Numbered from the stretch's first letter, positions 13,901 to 35,900 are shown. The stretch is DNA of 64,000 nucleotides from Macrostomum hystrix (GCA_950097015.1 CATNEN010000038.1:25234001-25298000), one strand, 5' to 3'. The notes: a model not told the origin generated them from the sequence alone. A program made the numbers and translations.

Positions 13901-16478
13901 CTTCTGACTCTGGCGTTGCGTCCAATTGGGACTGCGGAATTGAAAATGCGATTGAGAGGTCTAGGGTTCGATTCCGCAGTCTATATAGTGTTCAGTTGAG
14001 TAATTAACTTGAGTATCCATAGTGACAATAAATCGGTCATATATTTGGTAAAAAAATATTCGCTAATACTACTAACTTATGAGTAGTTAAACTAAACATA
14101 ATTCAAGTCTTACTTTCAGCTGGGCAATATTGTACCGCGCTAGGCCGCGCATAGTTACACGGGGCCTCAGGTGATAAGCGAAATGTTCAGCCAGATAGTT
14201 GGCTAATCTTTGCATAATCTCGTCCTCCGGTTTGAATACTAGACTCACGAGCTCAGTGAGGGTGACGCATTGCTTTCTGTGAAAATAATGTTGGAAGCAA
14301 GATAATTAAATTATATGTACCACTGAATTATATATACCGCTGTAATTACTCATATTTTTCACAGATACTTTATACTTTAGATAGTTCACTTTCTATGACT
14401 ACAATTGAACGCCTATTAAAACTTGCTGTCCAGTAGCAAAAGTGTATTTTAATGTCTTTTTGCAACTCGCAATAAGAATTTTGGAAAACTAAAGTGCGTG
14501 GTTTGCCGCTAGACCAGGGGTTGGCAAACATATTAGCGTGCGGGTCAAGGAGAGAACCTAAAAGACGGCTGCGGGCCGCAGTGACTTATGAGAAAGGGGA
14601 GACATAAATCACATGATAGATAAGACAGGGGAGATAAGACAGGAGAGATAAGACAGGGGAGAAATAAGACAGGAGAGATGAGACATGGGGGAGATGAGTG
14701 TGAGAGATAAGACAGGAGAGATAAGACAGGGGAGATAAGACAGGGGAGAGATAAGACAGGAGAGATAAGACAGGAGAAATAAGACAGGAGAGATAAGACA
14801 GGAGAGATAAGACAGGGGAGAGATAAGACAGGAGAGATAAGACAGGAGAGATAAGACAGGAGAGATAAGACAGGAGAGATAAGACAGGAGATATAAGACA
14901 GGGGAGAGATAAGACAGGAGAGATGAGACATGGGGGAGATGAGTGTGAGAGATACAATTCAGACTACTGACAACAGTAGAAAAGCAGACTTGGCTGCAAA
15001 ACTCTCACATAACACAAAAAAAGTATCGCCATAAAAATGGCAAGCTTAAAAGAGACTTCTGTGCACACTGAGAGTGGTGGGAGAGGACTGCGTGTGGCTA
15101 TGGCCGACTGACGAAGGCAAACAAGCCAGAAACCGGTCTCAGTCTGCCATCGCGAGGTTTGTTCCCCACTTTTAGTGTGTTACAATGAGACAGGGGAGAG
15201 ATGAGACAGGGGAGAGATTAGACACGGGAGAGATGAGACACGGGAGAGATAAGACAGGAGAGATGAGACATGGGAGAGATGAGGTGAGAGATGAGAACAC
15301 TCGTTTAGGTGTGTTAATCACTCTCTCTAATGGGAGAGATTAGACACGGGAGAGATGAGACACGGGAGAGATAAGACAGGAGAGATGAGACATGGGAGAG
15401 ATGAGGTGAGAGATGAGAACACTCGTTTAGGTGTTGGAAGGGGCAACGGGCGGGATTTGGGAGCTTCGAGGGCCGCATCTGGCCCGCGGGCCGGAGTTTG
15501 CTGACCTCTGCGCTAGACATAGTCAAGGATTTGTCTTATGGCTTAAGTGCCTTAAGTTGAATTTGGCGTCAATAACAATCTGCAAGTTGTGGCCAATAAA
15601 AGTACTCGTAAACAAACGAGAGACGATGTAAACAAGTCAGACCCTGAGCATGGACCTATATATATAGCGTCTATATAACGTTATTTGGTCGTAAAAATAT
15701 AAACGGAGAACTAGCCGCAATAAATAGAAAAATGTCAATCATAATAACAGCGCCGATATGTATAGAAATATTTCTGTCACCATCAAATATACCCCATATG
15801 TATCGAAAAAAAACTATAAGGTCCGTATATTGGATTTGGTACGACATGCAGCCAATGAACACTAGTTTCTCACCTATAGAAATCCAAACCAGCCAACTGT
15901 TCTCTCTGAGCAGCTATTCTATCCCGATGCCAGGCCTCCTTAAGCGAGGACAAACTATCAAAGAAGTCCTCAGCTGGCAACTCTTGGAATAGGGCGTCAA
16001 TAACAAATCTTGAGCCGCATAGATCAACAGCGGCCACTAGATAAGCGGTGAGGGCGTCCAGGTATTCGCGAGTGACTAGCGGCTTGGCCAAGAAGCTGGC
16101 TAAAAGAAATCGTCTAGACGACTGCGGCGGCTCTGGGAAATACCGATGAAGTTCGGCATTGAGTAGGCAGAGCTGAGAATTAATGCACGAGATTTCAAAT
16201 AGAGTGTAGACACCCATGTAGGATACTGGCTGCTTCGAATGACTCTGTCGGCTCTTTTGATGCCGAGACTGGCGCTCGTTGCAATTGATTGTTAACCGAC
16301 TGTTCTCTTCATCCCAACTGAGTTGGAAGTCTAAAGTTTGCGGATGCTGCTGCTGCTGCTGATTTTGAGTCGGATCTATTATGACTCGATTGATTGGCAC
16401 CCAGTCCGGGTCCAACGAGTCTAATTGTTCCTCGGCTATCAGAGCCGAAGCAGCCGCGACCGCTCGCGAAGAATGCGC
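10957..16478 (-). CDS. WHAMM: WHAMM/JMY-family actin nucleation-promoting factor; exons 16478-15874, 14276-14114, 13931-13753, 13371-13131, 12522-12079, 11568-10957 (747 sense codons, no genomic ATG)
   Basis: All GT-AG junctions join in one frame. N-terminus EEQLDSLDPDWVPI resembles WHAMM EQPDSLEGWVPV; coiled-coil middle; polyproline; WH2 (EDMFAMIRRGVTLRRV); C helix (LMGEISNKLNAIRFAA); acidic tail. Confidence 0.85.
11810..12060. repeat. Degenerate AAAGTAACGGAC repeat (also 12545-12630), flanking WHAMM exon 5
   Basis: Recurrent aaagtaacg(g/c)ac units in both adjacent introns. Confidence 0.7.
12743..13057 (-). mobile_element. tRNA-derived SINE (family A), internal deletion, intronic
   Basis: Near-identical to 5826-6178 but lacking the catcgtcaggcagtgtacac segment. 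Confidence 0.85.
13426..13535 (+). mobile_element. tRNA-derived SINE (family B) head; family A fragment nearby at 13618-13668
   Basis: ggggg...agcctagtggttagagtgtcggact...ggttcgattct with A and B boxes. Confidence 0.65.
14515..15510. mobile_element. Non-autonomous hAT (Buster/Charlie-type) MITE carrying an internal GAGACAG minisatellite
   Basis: Imperfect TIRs CAGGGGTTGGCAAAC / GTTTGCTGACCTCTG; perfect 8-bp TSD CGCTAGAC at 14507-14514 and 15511-15518 with central TA. Confidence 0.88.
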
Positions 16479-17772: not shown

Positions 17773-17991
17773 GCTATTCTCTGGAAAATTCCAGTCCAAA
17801 AATAGAACTTCTACTTCAAGGCTTAAAGGCTGATAATGAATCAACTGCAGAGTTTGGTGAGAAACAAATACAAGTGCGCATGTACCATTCTGATTCATAT
17901 AAAAGAGACCGACACAAAACGTGAAATAAAAAATTGAGAATATGTTTATCGAAAATTTATTAAACGATGTTAAATGTTAACAAAATATCGT

Positions 17992-20657
17992 TCAATCAGC
18001 CGACGGCATGCACTTTAGTCGCTTGAATGCGGCCTCCTCAAGGCTCTTGCGATGATCCGGGTGAGCAATCTGGATTAGGTGATAAGCTCGTTGACGAAGA
18101 TTCTTGCCCCATAGCTGGGCGATGCCGTATTCGGTAACAATGTAGTGCACGTGAGCACGGGTAGTAACAACACCTGCGCCTGTTAGTGCCGGTATTAATG
18201 GGTGAGATTAGGGATAGGGTAAGGTAGATCGAAAGTAGGAGAGGTTAGAATACGATACGAATACCTACGAATTGCCTAGAAAACAGAATAAGAGTACATG
18301 AGTTAATGATGGATTAGATAAGATAATAATATAATAATATAATTAGCAGATCGGAAGTAGATAAAGAAGATAAGGAGTGGATGAGATAGATTGGGAGTGG
18401 ATGAGGCGGATTGGGAGTGGACGAGGCAGATTGGGAGTGGATGATGTAGATTGGAGGTGGATGAGGCAGATTGGGAGTAGATGAGGCAGATTGGATGTGG
18501 ATGAGGCAGATTGGGAGTGGATGAAGCAGATTGGAGTAGATTGTGTAGATTGGGAGTAGATGAGGCAGATTAAGGCAGTCTAATACACTGACCCTCTTTA
18601 ATGAAAGGTGTAATCTTGGTGACGCCCTTCTTTGTAGCGGACTGCAGTGCAATGATTGGCTTGCCGCGACCGTCCGTGCCAAGGGCAGCGCCCCGAATGA
18701 AATCGATCTGACCGCCAACTCCAGAATAGATTCTGGGCCCAATGGAGTCGCTCACAACCTGGCCAGTGAGGTCAACTTCGATGCAAGAATTGATAGCCGT
18801 AACTTTCGGATTCTGACAGATCACCGAGGTTCGATTCGTGAATTGAATATCGCACATATCAACAAACGGATTATCGTTAATAAAGTTGAACACTTTGCTG
18901 CTGCCAATAACAAAGCCGGAGACAATCTTTCCGGGTTTAATCTTTTTCATGGCGTTAGTAATTGCGCCTGTTTGAGTCAGATCGACAACACCATCGGAGA
19001 ACATCTCGGTGTGAATGCCCAAGTCTTTGTGCGATCCAAGTTCAGCAAGGACAGCATCCGGTATGCTGCCAATGCCCATCTGCAGGGTGGCGCCATTCTC
19101 TACAAGATTCTGAGCAATCTGTTTGCCGATAGCGGCCTCTGCTTCGTCCATTACTCTAGCCGGCATTTCTTGCAGATTCTCAGGCATGTGTACAAAGCAG
19201 TCAACGTGCGACGAATGTATGTAGGCGTCGCCTCTTGTGCGCGGCGTCTTGGGATTCACCTGGGCGATGATCACGCGAGCGTTCTGAATTGCCGCCCTGG
19301 TGCAGTCAACAGAGGGACCCAGGCTGCAGAACCCGTGCCTGGGGAATAGCAAATTGGGAAACCAAAGATGACTACTTATAACAATAACAATTGCAGGAAG
19401 GCTACGGGCAATGGCACCCCATTTGGTGACAGTAGACCCGAAGCCAGCGAGGAGGCAATTCTGCCCATTTCGCTGACTCCTCAGCACACATGTTCTGTAC
19501 GAAGGCGCACACTCGCACAAGTGTGTACATCTGCCCTCAATGGCGTAAATTGCACGACAAGCCCCCAAGCCTCGTTCGCGGATGTGTCCTAAATAAATGT
19601 GGCCTCGCCGTGGAATCGAACTCAGGAACCTTGGTGCGTGAGGCAAACGCGTTAACCGCTGTGCCACTCACCCCGTAGGTGACAAATTGTAATTCTTTAA
19701 TGATGACGTTATTTAATAGGCTAATTTTAATCCATCATTAAAGAGGCTGATTCTAATTATTTATTGGGATTATTAAATACACCGATTCTAACCCGGTCAT
19801 AGGATTATTGAAAAGGCTGATTCTACTTCTTTAAGGGAGTATAAAAGAGGCAGATTTTAATCCTTCCTATGGTTAAAATGAAGAAGCTGTTCAATAAACC
19901 GTAGCAAAGCTACAAACCTGTCAGGCGGTGTCACCATGATTAATGCCAAGTCTAGTTTGATGTGATTTCGGCGAAATAGCAATGGAATTTCCGACAGAAA
20001 TATAGGCGTAAAATCTGCTCGGCCTTCCTGAATAGCCTTGCGACAATTCGACGAAGTGAAGAGCGAATTGCTGCGAAAGGTGCCCTCAAACTCGGGCTCG
20101 TTGTACCTAAAATTTTGGGACAGATGTTAAAAGTAAGTAAATTTTGTAAATCCATCATCCTATGGATCTGAAATAAAAATCGTTAATCGTTAAGTCTTTG
20201 GATCTGGGATAACAATCGTTGATCGTTAATTTTCTGAATAATCTAGGATAGATAATCGCTAAACGCTAATCCTATGGATCCGAGAAAGCCAGTTAATAAT
20301 CCTCAGGATCTGAGATTGCTAGAGAAAAACTATATTGCAAAAATCAGTTTCTGACTTGGCTGGTCCTTCAGTGTGAATGTGCATCAGTCGGATGTCCTTA
20401 AGCTTCCTCTCCTTGGCCACTTCCACCATCTTATCGATGAGGTGATTAGGAGTGGAGGCGCCGCCGTGGATAAAGATGTGCTGCTTGCTGTCCAGATGAC
20501 GCTCGAACGCCTGTTGACCATTGAGCCATTCAGGATTACGACCGGGTATTGGATGAAATGGTTCGTGATGAATTTCGCCGGCTAAATAATAGGAGCGCTT
20601 CAATGCTAAAGTGACACGACTAGATAGACCAGCGCGACTCGTGAGTAACAGCATCAT
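17992..20657 (-). CDS. Mitochondrial acetyl-CoA hydrolase / acetate:succinate CoA-transferase; exons 20657-20356, 20106-19918, 19338-18593, 18179-17992 (474 aa)
   Basis: In-frame GT-AG splicing; motifs HGFCSLG, TLQMGIGSIPDAVL, LGIHTEMFSDG, YSGVGGQIDF, GAGVVTTRAHVHYIVTEYG; Arg/Ser/Leu-rich presequence-like N-terminus; AATAAA at ~17956-17961. Confidence 0.93.
18345..18577. repeat. 20-bp minisatellite (GATGAGGCAGATTGGGAGTG) in CoA-transferase intron
   Basis: Tandem units. Confidence 0.9.
19375..19674 (-). mobile_element. tRNA-derived SINE (family A), internally deleted, intronic
   Basis: Shared head, body and tail; creates the false N-terminus of ORF 18570..19667. Confidence 0.85.
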
Positions 20658-20871
20658 GGCTGGCTGCCTGTAGAGAGAGAATCTTTATAAGATGACAACG
20701 CGTTTACATATTAAAACGACTACATAGTTACTACATAGCAAAAATCACTTACCTGAATTCAAATATTTTGTTTATCAATAGAGCAGTCTGAATCTAAAAT
20801 GAAAACAAATCTTGTTTTAATTAATTAGAGTTATATATAACTTTTATTTTAAAAAAGCCTAGTGTTATAAA

Positions 20872-20944
20872 GTGCATCAGAAACTATTAAATATTATCAT
20901 TTTTAGTCAATAGTTGAACATGGAAAATAATTACATCATCTTAT
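20872..20944 (-). ncRNA. Box C/D snoRNA copy 1 (28S guide CCAUGUUCAACU)
   Basis: C AUGAUGU 20939-20933, guide 20923-20912, D' UUGA 20910-20907, C' AUGAUAA 20900-20894, D CUGA 20880-20877; D box 82 nt from the 3' splice site. Confidence 0.8.
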
Positions 20945-21143
20945 GATTATGGCGTCACATTTTTTTACAGAAACAATGAACTAAAAATGTACTTATAAAT
21001 TAAGAAGCTGACTCACAGATATTTGAGTGATTTCTTCGAGATAAAAAGCTCTTCTCTGAAATTAATATATTATAGTATTCTATTAAATTTGATATACCTG
21101 ACTCAAAAGAAAAAAACAATAAAGGTGAACAAGTTGTTACAGC

Positions 21144-21219
21144 ATTTCAGAAGATATTTATCAATTATCATGAAGTACAGCTCAATAGTTGAACATGGAA
21201 ATAAATTGCATCATGAAAA
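21144..21219 (-). ncRNA. Box C/D snoRNA copy 2
   Basis: C AUGAUGC 21214-21208, guide 21198-21187, D' UUGA, C' AUGAUAA 21171-21165, D CUGA 21150-21147; short terminal stem; 90 nt from the 3' splice site. Confidence 0.82.
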
Positions 21220-21402
21220 AACTTACAAATATATATACATTATTAATCTATCTACTATACATAATACATAACTTACCTTAATTTAGTGAAGTGAAGTGGA
21301 CAGTGGTAGACAGTATCTAAAACAAAAGAAACATTACACATATTGGACAAATTTCAAATAGACCAACCTTATATAAGCATATATACAATCTGTGTATCTA
21401 TA

Positions 21403-21480
21403 CATCTCAGAAAATAATATGATAATTCTTTCAGCATTCATGCTTGCAGAAGTTGAACATGGAAACAACATCATTGGATA
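21403..21480 (-). ncRNA. Box C/D snoRNA copy 3
   Basis: C AUGAUGU 21474-21468, guide 21462-21451, D' CUGC, C' AUGCUGA 21437-21431, D CUGA 21410-21407; 89 nt from the 3' splice site. Confidence 0.75.
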
Positions 21481-21683
21481 ATACACAAAAATATAGCAAA
21501 ATAATTAAAACTTTAGTTGCACAAATAGATTTAAAACACGACATAATAATGCTATCTTACCTGTTAAATGACTCAATTTTCAAGATAATTAATTTAGTTT
21601 ACTCAGTAAAGTCCAAGATGTTCTGAAAAATCATGAGTTTAAAGCTGGATTAAAAAGTTTTTGTAATGGACTACTTAAAAAGT

Positions 21684-21767
21684 TTCTTAGTACTGTAAAT
21701 TACTTTTTTTAATTGCAATCAACTCTTGTTCAGTAGTTGAACATGGAAAACAGAAGCATCATTATAT
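21684..21767 (-). ncRNA. Box C/D snoRNA copy 4 (terminal D box apparently degenerate, CUAA)
   Basis: C AUGAUGC 21762-21756, guide 21746-21735, D' CUGA 21733-21730, C'-like UUGAUUG, CUAA at 21690-21687. Confidence 0.6.
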
Positions 21768-21934
21768 GTAAATAATTATTTCTTTATTTGTTACTAGAAA
21801 AACAATTTTATTTTCAACTTTTTGTTAGGCCTATAAAAAATAAGGCCATATTTTTACAATGTGCATATCATGTATAATTTAAGCCCCATTGGAATAAGTG
21901 GACAAAGGGCATCCAACTGACTATAATATGTTAA

Positions 21935-22102
21935 TAATTGCAGGAGGGCTGCAGGCAATGGCACATGATTTGGAGACACTGGACTAGATCCATTCCATAG
22001 CTAGCAAGGGGGCAATTCTGCCCATTTTGCTGACTCCTGAGCACACACACAGATACTGTATGCAGACACTTATATAGGTAATACACATCGGCCCTGACTT
22101 TC
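21935..22102 (-). mobile_element. SINE family A, 3' fragment
   Basis: Matches the 3' half of 5826-6178. Confidence 0.75.
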
Positions 22103-32900: not shown

Positions 32901-35900
32901 ATAGAATTAGAGACAGGGGCAGAGAGAATGAGAGACAGGGGCAGAGAAAATGAGAGACAGGGGAAGAGAGAATGAGAGACAGGGGGAAAGAGAATGAGAG
33001 ACAGGGGCAGAGAGAATTAGAGACAGGGGGGGAGAGAATGAGAGACAGGGGGAGAGAGAATGAGAGACATGGGGAGAGAGAATTAGAGACATGGGGAGAG
33101 AGAATGAGAGACATGGGGAGAGAGAATGAGAGACAGGGGTAGAGAGAATGAGAGACAGGGGCAGAGAGAATGAGAGACAGGGAGAGAGAGAATGAGAGAC
33201 AGGGAGAGAGAGAATGAGAGACAGGGGGAGAGAGAATGAGAAACAGTGAGAGAGAGAATGACAGATATATTTAGAGAATGAGAGACGGGGGGGAGAGAGA
33301 ATGAGAGACAGGGAGAGAGAGAATGAGAGACAGGGGGAGAGAGAATGAGAGACAGGGGGAGAGAGAATGAGAGACAGTGAGAGAGAGAATGACGGATATA
33401 TTTAGAGAATGAGAGACGGGGAATTGAGTTAGTAAATCATTTTAACAAAGTATTTCTTTTGAAGTTTACTGAAATCGTTCACCTGTAACAAATGAATTCA
33501 GCATCAGCTCTACAAGAAGAAGCAGCAGTACGCTAAGGCCATTAACGAGCGAAATCGTGTCACCATGGTTACTGCCGACAAGACACAGCAACCCCAGCAG
33601 CAGCAGCAGCAGCAGCAGCAGCAAGTATCTTCAAGACTTCAAGCTGACGATAAGCCAAAGATTGAACAGCAACAGACAACAACAACAACGCAACAGTCTG
33701 CAGAAAGTAAGAAAGATAAACAGGAACAAACTCAGCAGCAGCAGCAGCAGCAAAGGGCGCAGCAAATTGATTCGAAAACTGGCCAAACGTTAAGCGAAGC
33801 TGAATTTCTAGCCAAACAAGAGGCTCAGGGGAAGCGAATGAGGGTGAGGATATGTTTTGGGACTGGCCTAGTTCATGTGTCGCTCTAAGAAAATCTAATA
33901 TAGCGGATATAAAATTAGGATAAGCTGATAAAGGAATTTGCAAGCTAAAATCAATATTGACCACTTAAATAAATATAAAATTATTGAGGCACTATACCTT
34001 AAACAAACTTTTGACTTCGAAAACACTCTTATTACAGGCTTAGTTCTCACCGCATCAAAAAATCTCAATATTGCAAACTTTTTCTTAACTTGTTTCAGAT
34101 GAAACAGTACTCAAAGAGTTTACAGAATAATAAACAGCAGCAGCAGCAGCAGCAGCAGACTCAGTCGAAGAAGCCGCCAGTCAAGTCGAATCATCAGCAA
34201 CAGCAAAAGTCATCTGCAGATGTTGACAAGGTATTCTACGGTTCGAAGCAATGCCAGGACGCAGTAGGGAATGTCAGGACACAGTAGGGAATGTCAGGAC
34301 ACAGTAGGGAATGTCAGGACACAGTAGGGAATGTCAGGACACGGTAGGGAATGTCAGGACACAGTTGGGAATGTCAGGACACAGTAGGGAATGTCAGGAC
34401 ACAGTAGGGAATGTCAGGACACAGTAGGGAATGTCAGGACACGGTAGGGAATGTCAGGACACAGTAGGGAATGTCAGGACACAGTAGGGAATGTCAGGAC
34501 ACAGTAGGGAATGTCAGCACACAGTTGGGAATGTCAGGACACAGTAGGGAATGTCAGGACACGGTAGGGAATGTCAGGACACAGTAGGGAATGTCAGCAC
34601 AGAGTTGGGAATGTCAGGACACGGTAGGGAATGTCAGGACACAGTAGGGAATGTCAGGACACAGTAGGGAATGTCAGGACACAGTAGGGAATGTCAGGAC
34701 ACAGTAGGGAATGTCAAGACACGGTAGGGAATGTCGGAACACAGTTGGGAATGTCAGAACACAGTAGGGAATGTCAGGACACAGTAGGGAATGTCAGGAC
34801 ACAGTAGGGAATGTCAGGACACAGTAGGGAATGTCAGGACACGGTAGGGAATGTCAGGACATAGTGGGGAATGTCAGGACACAGTAGGGAATGTCAGGAC
34901 ACAGTAGGGAATGTCAGCACACAGTAGGGAATGTCAGCACAGAGTTGGGAATGTCAGGACACAGTAGGGAATGTCAGGACACAGTAGGGAATGTCAGGAC
35001 ATAGTAGGGAATGTCAGGACACAGTAGGGAATGTCAGGACACAGTAGGGAATGTCAGGACACAGTAGGGAATGTCAGCACACAGTAGGGAATGTCAGCAC
35101 ACAGTTGGGAATGTCAGGACACAGTAGGGAATGTCAGGACACAGTAGGGAATGTCAGGACACGGTAGGGAATGTCAGCACAGAGTTGGGAATGTCAGGAC
35201 ACAGTAGGGAATGTCAGGACACAGTAGGGAATGTCAGCACAGAGTTGGGAATGTCAGGACACAGTAGGGAATGTCAGGACACAGTAGGGAATGTCAGGAC
35301 ACAGTAGGGAATGTCAGGATACAGTTGGGAATGTCAGGACACAGTAGGGAATGTCAGGACACAGTTGGGAATGTCAGGACACAGTAGGGAATGTCAGGAC
35401 ACAGTAGGGAATGTCAGGAAACAGTAGGGAATGTCAGGACACGGTAGGGAATGTCGGAACACAGTTGGGAATGTCAGAACACAGTAGGGAATGTCAGGAC
35501 ACAGTAGGGCATGTCAGAACACAGTAGGGAATGTCAGGACACAGTAGGGAATGTCAGGACACAGTTGGGAATGTCAGGAAACAGTAGGGAATGTAAGGAC
35601 ACGGTAGGGAATGTCGGAACACAGTAGGGAATGTCAGGACACAGTAGGGAATGTCAGGACACAGTAGGGAATGTCAGGACACGGTAGGGAATGTCAGGAC
35701 ACAGTAGGGAATGTCAGGACACAGTAGGGAATGTCAGCACACAGTAGGGAATGTCAGGACACGGTAGGGAATGTCGGAACACAGTTGGGAATGTCAGAAC
35801 ACAGTAGGGAATATCAGGACACAGTAGGGAATGTCAGGACACAGTAGGGAATGTCAGGACACAGTAGGGAATGTCAGGACACAGTAGGGAATGTCAGCAC

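Follow-up and report, generated by a model that had tools for sequence, protein, structure and literature searches.

Box C/D snoRNAs encoded in introns are released by splicing of the host pre-mRNA, and the excised introns are debranched and trimmed to the mature RNA. Among the hosts described in animals, UHG, GAS5 and the fly genes Uhg1-8 are non-coding, and the SNORD116 and SNORD115 clusters of SNURF-SNRPN are tandem arrays of exon-intron-snoRNA units with orphan guides. Protein-coding hosts have also been reported: human ATP5B contains the paralogs SNORD59A and SNORD59B (PMC3766210), and in the fly 53% of the C/D snoRNAs located inside host genes sit in protein-coding genes of several functional classes, with one host carrying the C/D snoRNA isoforms a-d (PMC11014333). 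Here we describe a flatworm locus found in a 64-kb window (the whole stretch of DNA that was analyzed). Within the 5' leader of a 4-hydroxybutyrate/acetyl-CoA transferase-like gene it very probably carries a set of paralogous box C/D snoRNA genes with a single guide each, and from these genes small RNAs and a methylation of the large subunit (LSU) rRNA are predicted. A first-pass annotation of this DNA had regarded an energy-metabolism gene as an unusual snoRNA host, a view that the case of ATP5B, a mitochondrial energy-metabolism gene, with SNORD59A/B contradicts (PMC3766210).

The array is marked by a 15-mer, AGTTGAACATGGAAA, that occurs on the plus strand at positions 20912, 21187, 21451 and 21735 of the window, in every case with 0 mismatches and at spacings of 275, 264 and 284 bp, in agreement with the four copies about 270 bp apart that had been noticed initially. 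Four matches were reached in none of 100 dinucleotide-preserving shuffles, and a repeat finder recovered the same four-copy family (D2). When the 220-Mb genome (G000, 42 contigs) was searched for exact matches to the guide in its D' register, these four places were the only ones retrieved. A profile model built from copies 2-4 (R1) scored 72 bits on copy 3, 60.6 on copy 4 and 59.6 on copy 2 in the genome search, and 27.9 bits on copy 1, where it aligned over model positions 3-65 only; among the best candidates scored, E-values below 0.001 were restricted to these four loci and no further match fell below E = 0.7. A mini-scan of the window for combinations of C box, guide and D box against the organism's own rRNAs revealed no further C/D candidates, and the same scan on shuffled windows returned 0-2 matches per 64 kb and never four at one target.

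On the minus strand, all four copies present the C box AUGAUG followed, after 4-8 nt, by UUUCCAUGUUCAACU, one further nucleotide and a D' box of the form YUGM (Table 1). The C box conforms to R-UGAUG in every copy, its seventh position being U or C, not A, and the D' box is degenerate in three copies. In copies 2, 3 and 4 a C'-like box comes next, and the D box has the canonical sequence CUGA; it lies 31-40 nt downstream of the guide and about 64-69 nt from the C box. The proposed order of C box, guide, 1 nt, D', C' and D thus stands for these three copies but not for copy 1, which has UUGAUU in place of C' and CUAA in place of D. As for the terminal stems, copy 2 can form a 7-bp external stem of -6.6 kcal/mol, and those of copies 3 and 4 are weak, with 2-4 weak pairs each. 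Counted from the D-box end, the 3' splice sites follow after 90, 91 and 83 nt, so the range of 63-90 nt given earlier has to be corrected to 83-91 nt. This is close to the optimum of about 70-80 nt that Hirose and Steitz reportedly found in 2001 for mammalian intronic C/D snoRNAs.

Table 1. Features of the host transcript and of the predicted snoRNA array (window coordinates).
Feature	Position	Strand	Remarks
AG of trans-splice acceptor	21623..21624	-	spliced leader ending ...UUGCAUG joined to base 21622
5'UTR exon E2, 62 nt	21561..21622	-	without ATG; first genomic exon
5'UTR micro-exon E3, 40 nt	21277..21316	-	joints 21316>21561 and 21055>21277, three runs
5'UTR micro-exon E4, 39 nt	21017..21055	-	joints 21055>21277 and 20793>21017, three runs
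5'UTR micro-exon E5, 41 nt	20753..20793	-	followed by 85-nt intron 20668-20752 without snoRNA; joint 20666>20752 (cut +1), four runs
First coding exon of host	20356..20667	-	start codon 20655-20657
Further host coding exons	17900..20106	-	about 19918-20106, about 18594-19338, 18179 and below
Predicted snoRNA copy 1 (defective/atypical)	21687..21768	-	C box 21757-21762, guide 21735-21749 and D' CUGA 21730-21733 intact; C' UUGAUU; CUAA 21687-21690; in outron
Predicted snoRNA copy 2 (intact)	21402..21479	-	C box 21469-21474, guide 21451-21465, D' CUGC 21446-21449, C'-like UGCUGA, D box 21407-21410; in 244-nt intron 21317-21560
Predicted snoRNA copy 3 (intact)	21144..21219	-	C box 21209-21214, guide 21187-21201, D' UUGA 21182-21185, C' AUGAUA, D box 21147-21150; in 221-nt intron 21056-21276
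Predicted snoRNA copy 4 (intact)	20872..20944	-	C box 20934-20939, guide 20912-20926, D' UUGA 20907-20910, C' AUGAUA, D box 20877-20880; in 223-nt intron 20794-21016

The 6 nt of the C box and the 15 nt of the guide are invariant across the four copies. The remaining parts were aligned separately, taking the stretch between donor and C box, that between D' and D, that between D box and acceptor, and the exon that follows; in none of them did two copies exceed mononucleotide shuffles, with z values from -0.9 to 2.3. The earlier observation that conservation is confined to boxes and guide was therefore correct, flanks, exons and spacers being at the level of shuffled sequence. Identity in the functional C/D parts together with random-level divergence elsewhere points to purifying selection, and a young repeat or gene conversion would not fit this conservation pattern. 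The period of 264-284 bp fits the proposal that an exon-intron-snoRNA unit was amplified in tandem; amplification of the whole unit is nevertheless not demonstrable, since no similarity survives outside the boxes and the guide.

The structure of the host transcript was established from assembled contigs. Three runs (X2-X4) come from one study of an organism B, with contigs 99-100% identical to the window; the kind of run is not on record, and they are taken as cDNA because the contigs skip introns. Their spliced contigs join 21561|21316, 21277|21055, 21017|20793 and 20753|20667, all on the minus strand and with GT..AG borders, and continue through the coding joints 20104>20354, 19337>19917 and 18178>18592. 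A fourth run (X1), from another study and a related organism (A) in which most aligned pieces are 90-95% alike, contains the last leader junction and two coding junctions. The last leader intron (20668-20752) was thus seen in four runs from two studies, exactly from the donor at 20752 to the acceptor at 20668 that had been predicted. In run X1 the last 5'UTR micro-exon (window 20752-20793) is identical over 42 nt and is spliced in the same way to the coding exon; for the 40 letters upstream of it, this contig gives no alignment at 90% identity.

None of the leader exons, of 62, 40, 39 and 41 nt, contains an ATG, and three of the four 5'UTR introns hold one snoRNA unit each. At the joints around the snoRNA-bearing introns contig depth was 115-154 in three runs, and in bins within these introns the depth came from exon bases only, the runs having the appearance of poly(A) libraries. 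The spliced contigs run from the micro-exons into the exon starting at 20667 and into the following coding exons, which bears out both the splicing and the CoA-transferase host that the first-pass annotation had put forward. Its further statement that each copy lies in an intron between AUG-free exons of 39-62 nt applies to copies 2-4 but not to copy 1, which is located in the outron.

By homology the host is a 4-hydroxybutyrate/acetyl-CoA transferase-like enzyme. Its protein matches the Pfam family PF13336 (acetyl-CoA hydrolase/transferase) at 8e-32, and its nearest homologues, from animals, bear the name 4-hydroxybutyrate CoA transferase and are up to 67% identical. The exons were searched separately. 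As the length window of the search leaves out full-length proteins, the homologues retrieved with the piece encoded by one exon (248 aa) were all distant ones from animals and bacteria, with identities of 67% at most. The search found no relatives of the first coding exon; the N-terminus has many Arg, Ser and Leu residues and resembles a mitochondrial presequence.

Two other stretches of the window are worth describing. An element repeated at 19390-19660, within the 579-nt host intron, and at 21930-22060, upstream of the array, reaches RNA contig depths of up to about 6400. Many contigs jump between both places or continue into sequence of no relation to them, as would be expected of a dispersed repeat that is abundantly transcribed. 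At 14545-15530 the window contains a minisatellite-like stretch with long ORFs on both strands and reiterated peptide units of the CLISPVLSL type, which is probably a non-coding tandem repeat.

The first genomic exon, E2, receives the Macrostomum spliced leader (SL) by trans-splicing at base 21622. Upstream of 21623 the contigs of three runs carry the same 22 letters, which are absent from the window and are therefore explained by a spliced leader. Allowing up to 1 mismatch, this string has at least 69 genomic occurrences, of which 33 are exact, and is adjoined by GTAAG donors; at one such locus the GTAAG donor is followed by a U-rich Sm-like site and a hairpin, as in an SL RNA gene. It equals the 3' part of the published spliced leader of Macrostomum lignano (PMC5173321), which marks the organism as a flatworm of the Macrostomum type. 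The AUG at the end of the leader opens, together with exon E2, an upstream ORF of 8 codons (MNILDFTE, stop UAA) ahead of the main start at 20657. An operon is unlikely, since the 12 kb upstream showed no coding ORF on the minus strand.

As the trans-splice acceptor opens the first genomic exon, copy 1 belongs to the outron and to no cis intron; its D' box is 107 nt upstream of the acceptor. This copy is most likely weakened or recently disabled. It is probably impaired by a single G-to-A difference at the D-box position and by its degenerate C' box, and the impairment would be recent or incomplete, because C box, guide and D' are perfectly kept. To our knowledge, maturation of a box C/D snoRNA from a trans-splicing outron has not been described. 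Since the divergence that randomized its flanks left these three elements of copy 1 perfect, one may speculate that the copy still works and that its RNA is processed out of the Y-branched outron which SL trans-splicing sets free, the array installing a lineage-specific Um where humans methylate neighbouring residues; we regard this scenario as rather unlikely.

A complement of the guide, whose absence from the organism's own rRNA would have spoken against the snoRNA reading, was found in the LSU rRNA. Extended to 21 nt, the guide complement has 17 genomic matches on three contigs, in tandem units mostly about 11.6 kb apart, and the exact complement is present in every rDNA unit found; one of these loci was identified as LSU rRNA (RF02543, 2589 bits). 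With positions counted from the Rfam-defined LSU start, the guide of all four copies pairs with LSU 1771-1783 over 13 bp (12 Watson-Crick pairs and 1 G-U), and the duplex ends 1 nt before D' in each of them. No comparable guide match was detected in SSU or 5.8S rRNA. The element upstream of the D box showed no consistent rRNA complement, and the RNAs are therefore considered single-guide. By the fifth-nucleotide rule established for C/D snoRNPs, the duplex predicts 2'-O-methylation of LSU U1774, the second U of AGUUGAAC.

Each rDNA unit (about 11.6 kb) was also seen to contain a U1 snRNA gene (RF00003, 151.7 bits, L123 8068-8230) and an SL RNA gene, both on the rRNA strand, within the spacer that separates the LSU from the following SSU (C15:2000-11999, which is L123). 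The SL copies are found at C15:9731-9752, 21376-21397 and 33021-33042, and likewise on contigs C17 and C42.

The predicted site was compared with the human and fly lists of 2'-O-methylated nucleotides (Nm). For the corresponding region the human list includes Am2401, Um2415, Cm2422 (guided by SNORD5) and Gm2424 (SNORD6) (PMC11550049). All four sites fall on the right letters of the local flatworm rRNA with one constant offset of 652. As this offset fits the four sites, LSU U1774 corresponds to what we take to be human 28S U2426, on the basis of the letter check and of the human sequence. The target is a self-complementary hairpin, CCAUGU...ACAUGG, which in humans carries Um2415, Cm2422 and Gm2424, the predicted site being 2 nt from the SNORD6 site and 4 nt from the SNORD5 site. 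The equivalent of U2426 itself is not in the human list (PMC11550049), and the fly list has no Nm site between Gm1692 and Am2183, an interval taken to span the target region (PMC11014333). Because neither human nor fly has a known Nm at the predicted target, conservation of the site lends no support to the prediction, and the Um would be apparently lineage-specific.

Concerning known snoRNA families, Rfam returned nothing in the whole window at gathering thresholds. At permissive E-values, SNORD5 and snR61 gave sub-threshold matches, the others (snoR32/R81, SNORD75 and mir-466) being evident chance. The best-scoring family for copy 4 was SNORD5 (RF01161), with 22.9 bits and an E-value of 0.85 for a gathering score of 55. 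The flatworm RNAs and SNORD5 are alike in targeting the same rRNA hairpin and in sharing the guide core UGUUCAACU, but they differ in the D' register, so that the flatworm target is a U located 4 nt 3' of the SNORD5 site, and beyond the boxes their backbones are unlike. Since the flatworm counterpart of human C2422 is mismatched with an A or U of the guide RNA, and given the score below 55 bits and the displaced target, membership in SNORD5 was rejected. A search of the organism's own genome for the SNORD5 family and for SNORD5-type guide patterns produced chance-level matches only, a small part of the candidates having been scored. The snR61/Z1/Z11 family (RF00476) was discarded as well: its matches reached 21.2 bits (on copy 2) and 21.5 bits against a threshold of 45, and the family guide fits a different rRNA segment.

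Metagenome sequences contain at least 80 loci combining a C box with the guide, none of which resembles this snoRNA. A stretch of 35 nt is common to 61 of these, many being located in contigs from gut metagenomes, and they were taken for bacterial DNA. A four-locus family from environmental contigs (L035, L037, L100 and L103) shows ATGATG, 7 nt and then CCATGTTCAACTGCTGA, which is antisense to the rRNA segment targeted here, with no recognizable C' or D box. Text searches of the literature for the guide or the target string retrieved PCR primers only, and among the papers searched we found none on Macrostomum snoRNAs.

The route by which these RNAs would be produced can be outlined from the observed splicing and the established biology of intronic C/D snoRNAs. 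The host pre-mRNA is trans-spliced to the leader at 21622 and then cis-spliced through the four short 5'UTR exons. Fibrillarin, Nop56, Nop58 and Snu13 would assemble co-transcriptionally on the C/D and C'/D' motifs, and after debranching and exonuclease trimming of the excised introns, snoRNPs with an RNA of roughly 70-75 nt would be left. In these particles the element upstream of D' would pair with LSU 1771-1783 and direct the fibrillarin-mediated methylation of U1774. The role of the host would be to supply transcription and splicing; the functional coupling of rRNA modification to energy metabolism that had been suggested for this locus is not backed by any evidence, and the locus gives no support to it.

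Other explanations for the conserved blocks have to be considered. The array might be the relic of one that was once functional, keeping box-like motifs and no longer yielding a stable RNA or methylating rRNA. Several features agree with decay, namely the lack of a canonical D box and C' box in copy 1, the degenerate D' boxes, the weak terminal stems of copies 3 and 4, the failure to reach any Rfam family at threshold and the emptiness of the introns in the spliced-mRNA contigs. Neutral decay, however, would have hit the guide too, whereas guide and C box are identical in all four copies against a background of random-level similarity, and these copies are the sole carriers of the guide in the genome, so we consider a relic highly unlikely. 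A second possibility is that the blocks are intronic cis-elements of the host pre-mRNA, controlling for instance its splicing or expression, and that their likeness to C/D boxes and to antisense rRNA is a coincidence. Their similar positions in similar-sized introns of one gene would be expected in that case, but it leaves unexplained why an exact 12-nt Watson-Crick rRNA complement should end 1 nt before a D'-type box, with a C box 4-8 nt upstream and, in three copies, CUGA 31-40 nt downstream. The scarcity of such matches in shuffled windows, which never gave four at one target, and the position of one copy outside any cis intron also speak against a cis-element, and its probability is very slight.

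The remaining alternative accepts the copies as real C/D snoRNPs and assigns them a different task, either mainly as chaperones of rRNA folding or as guides for another position; with D' in a non-canonical register this could, for instance, be the SNORD5-type C located 4 nt upstream. That the core UGUUCAACU is common to the guide and to the Rfam SNORD5 consensus, that human Cm2422 and Gm2424 are so near to the predicted site, and that the guide must open the self-complementary hairpin are all in keeping with this. The nucleotide after CAACU is nevertheless A or U in the four copies and faces the C equivalent to human C2422; this C would be unpaired and could not be the methylated residue, and no box-like motif exists 4 nt further downstream. 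We give very little weight to a different register or to a chaperone role, and retain single-guide box C/D snoRNA genes directed to U1774 as the most probable explanation of the array.

Taken together, our results describe an ordinary, well-supported example of a known gene layout, metabolic hosts of snoRNAs being known already. The locus is a cleanly documented flatworm case of predicted snoRNA genes housed by 5'UTR introns of a coding mRNA that undergoes trans-splicing, and it offers the prediction of rRNA methylation at LSU U1774, a site that neither the human nor the fly list contains. It also provides a natural comparison within one transcript, where three cis-intron copies are intact and the outron copy has a damaged D box, a contrast that bears on whether snoRNA maturation needs cis-splicing.

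Compared with ATP5B and the fly isoforms, the flatworm locus shares the arrangement of one snoRNA per intron, paralogs with the same guide, an expressed housekeeping-type host and a D box that precedes the 3' splice site by tens of nucleotides. It differs from them in that all copies lie among non-coding micro-exons of 39-62 nt in a 5' leader, in that the mRNA is trans-spliced to an SL, and in having one copy in the outron. With UHG, GAS5 and the SNORD115-116 arrays it has in common short, poorly conserved and ATG-free exons, a regular period and the conservation of the snoRNA only. The GAS5/UHG layout first attributed to it is thus apt as regards the diverged micro-exons and the single snoRNA per intron, but not as regards the host, which is protein-coding: the micro-exons splice onto acetyl-CoA hydrolase/transferase coding exons, and a non-coding host gene of the UHG/GAS5 type was rejected. 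Unlike those arrays, the flatworm locus forms the leader of a coding mRNA, consists of four units only and has a clear rRNA target.
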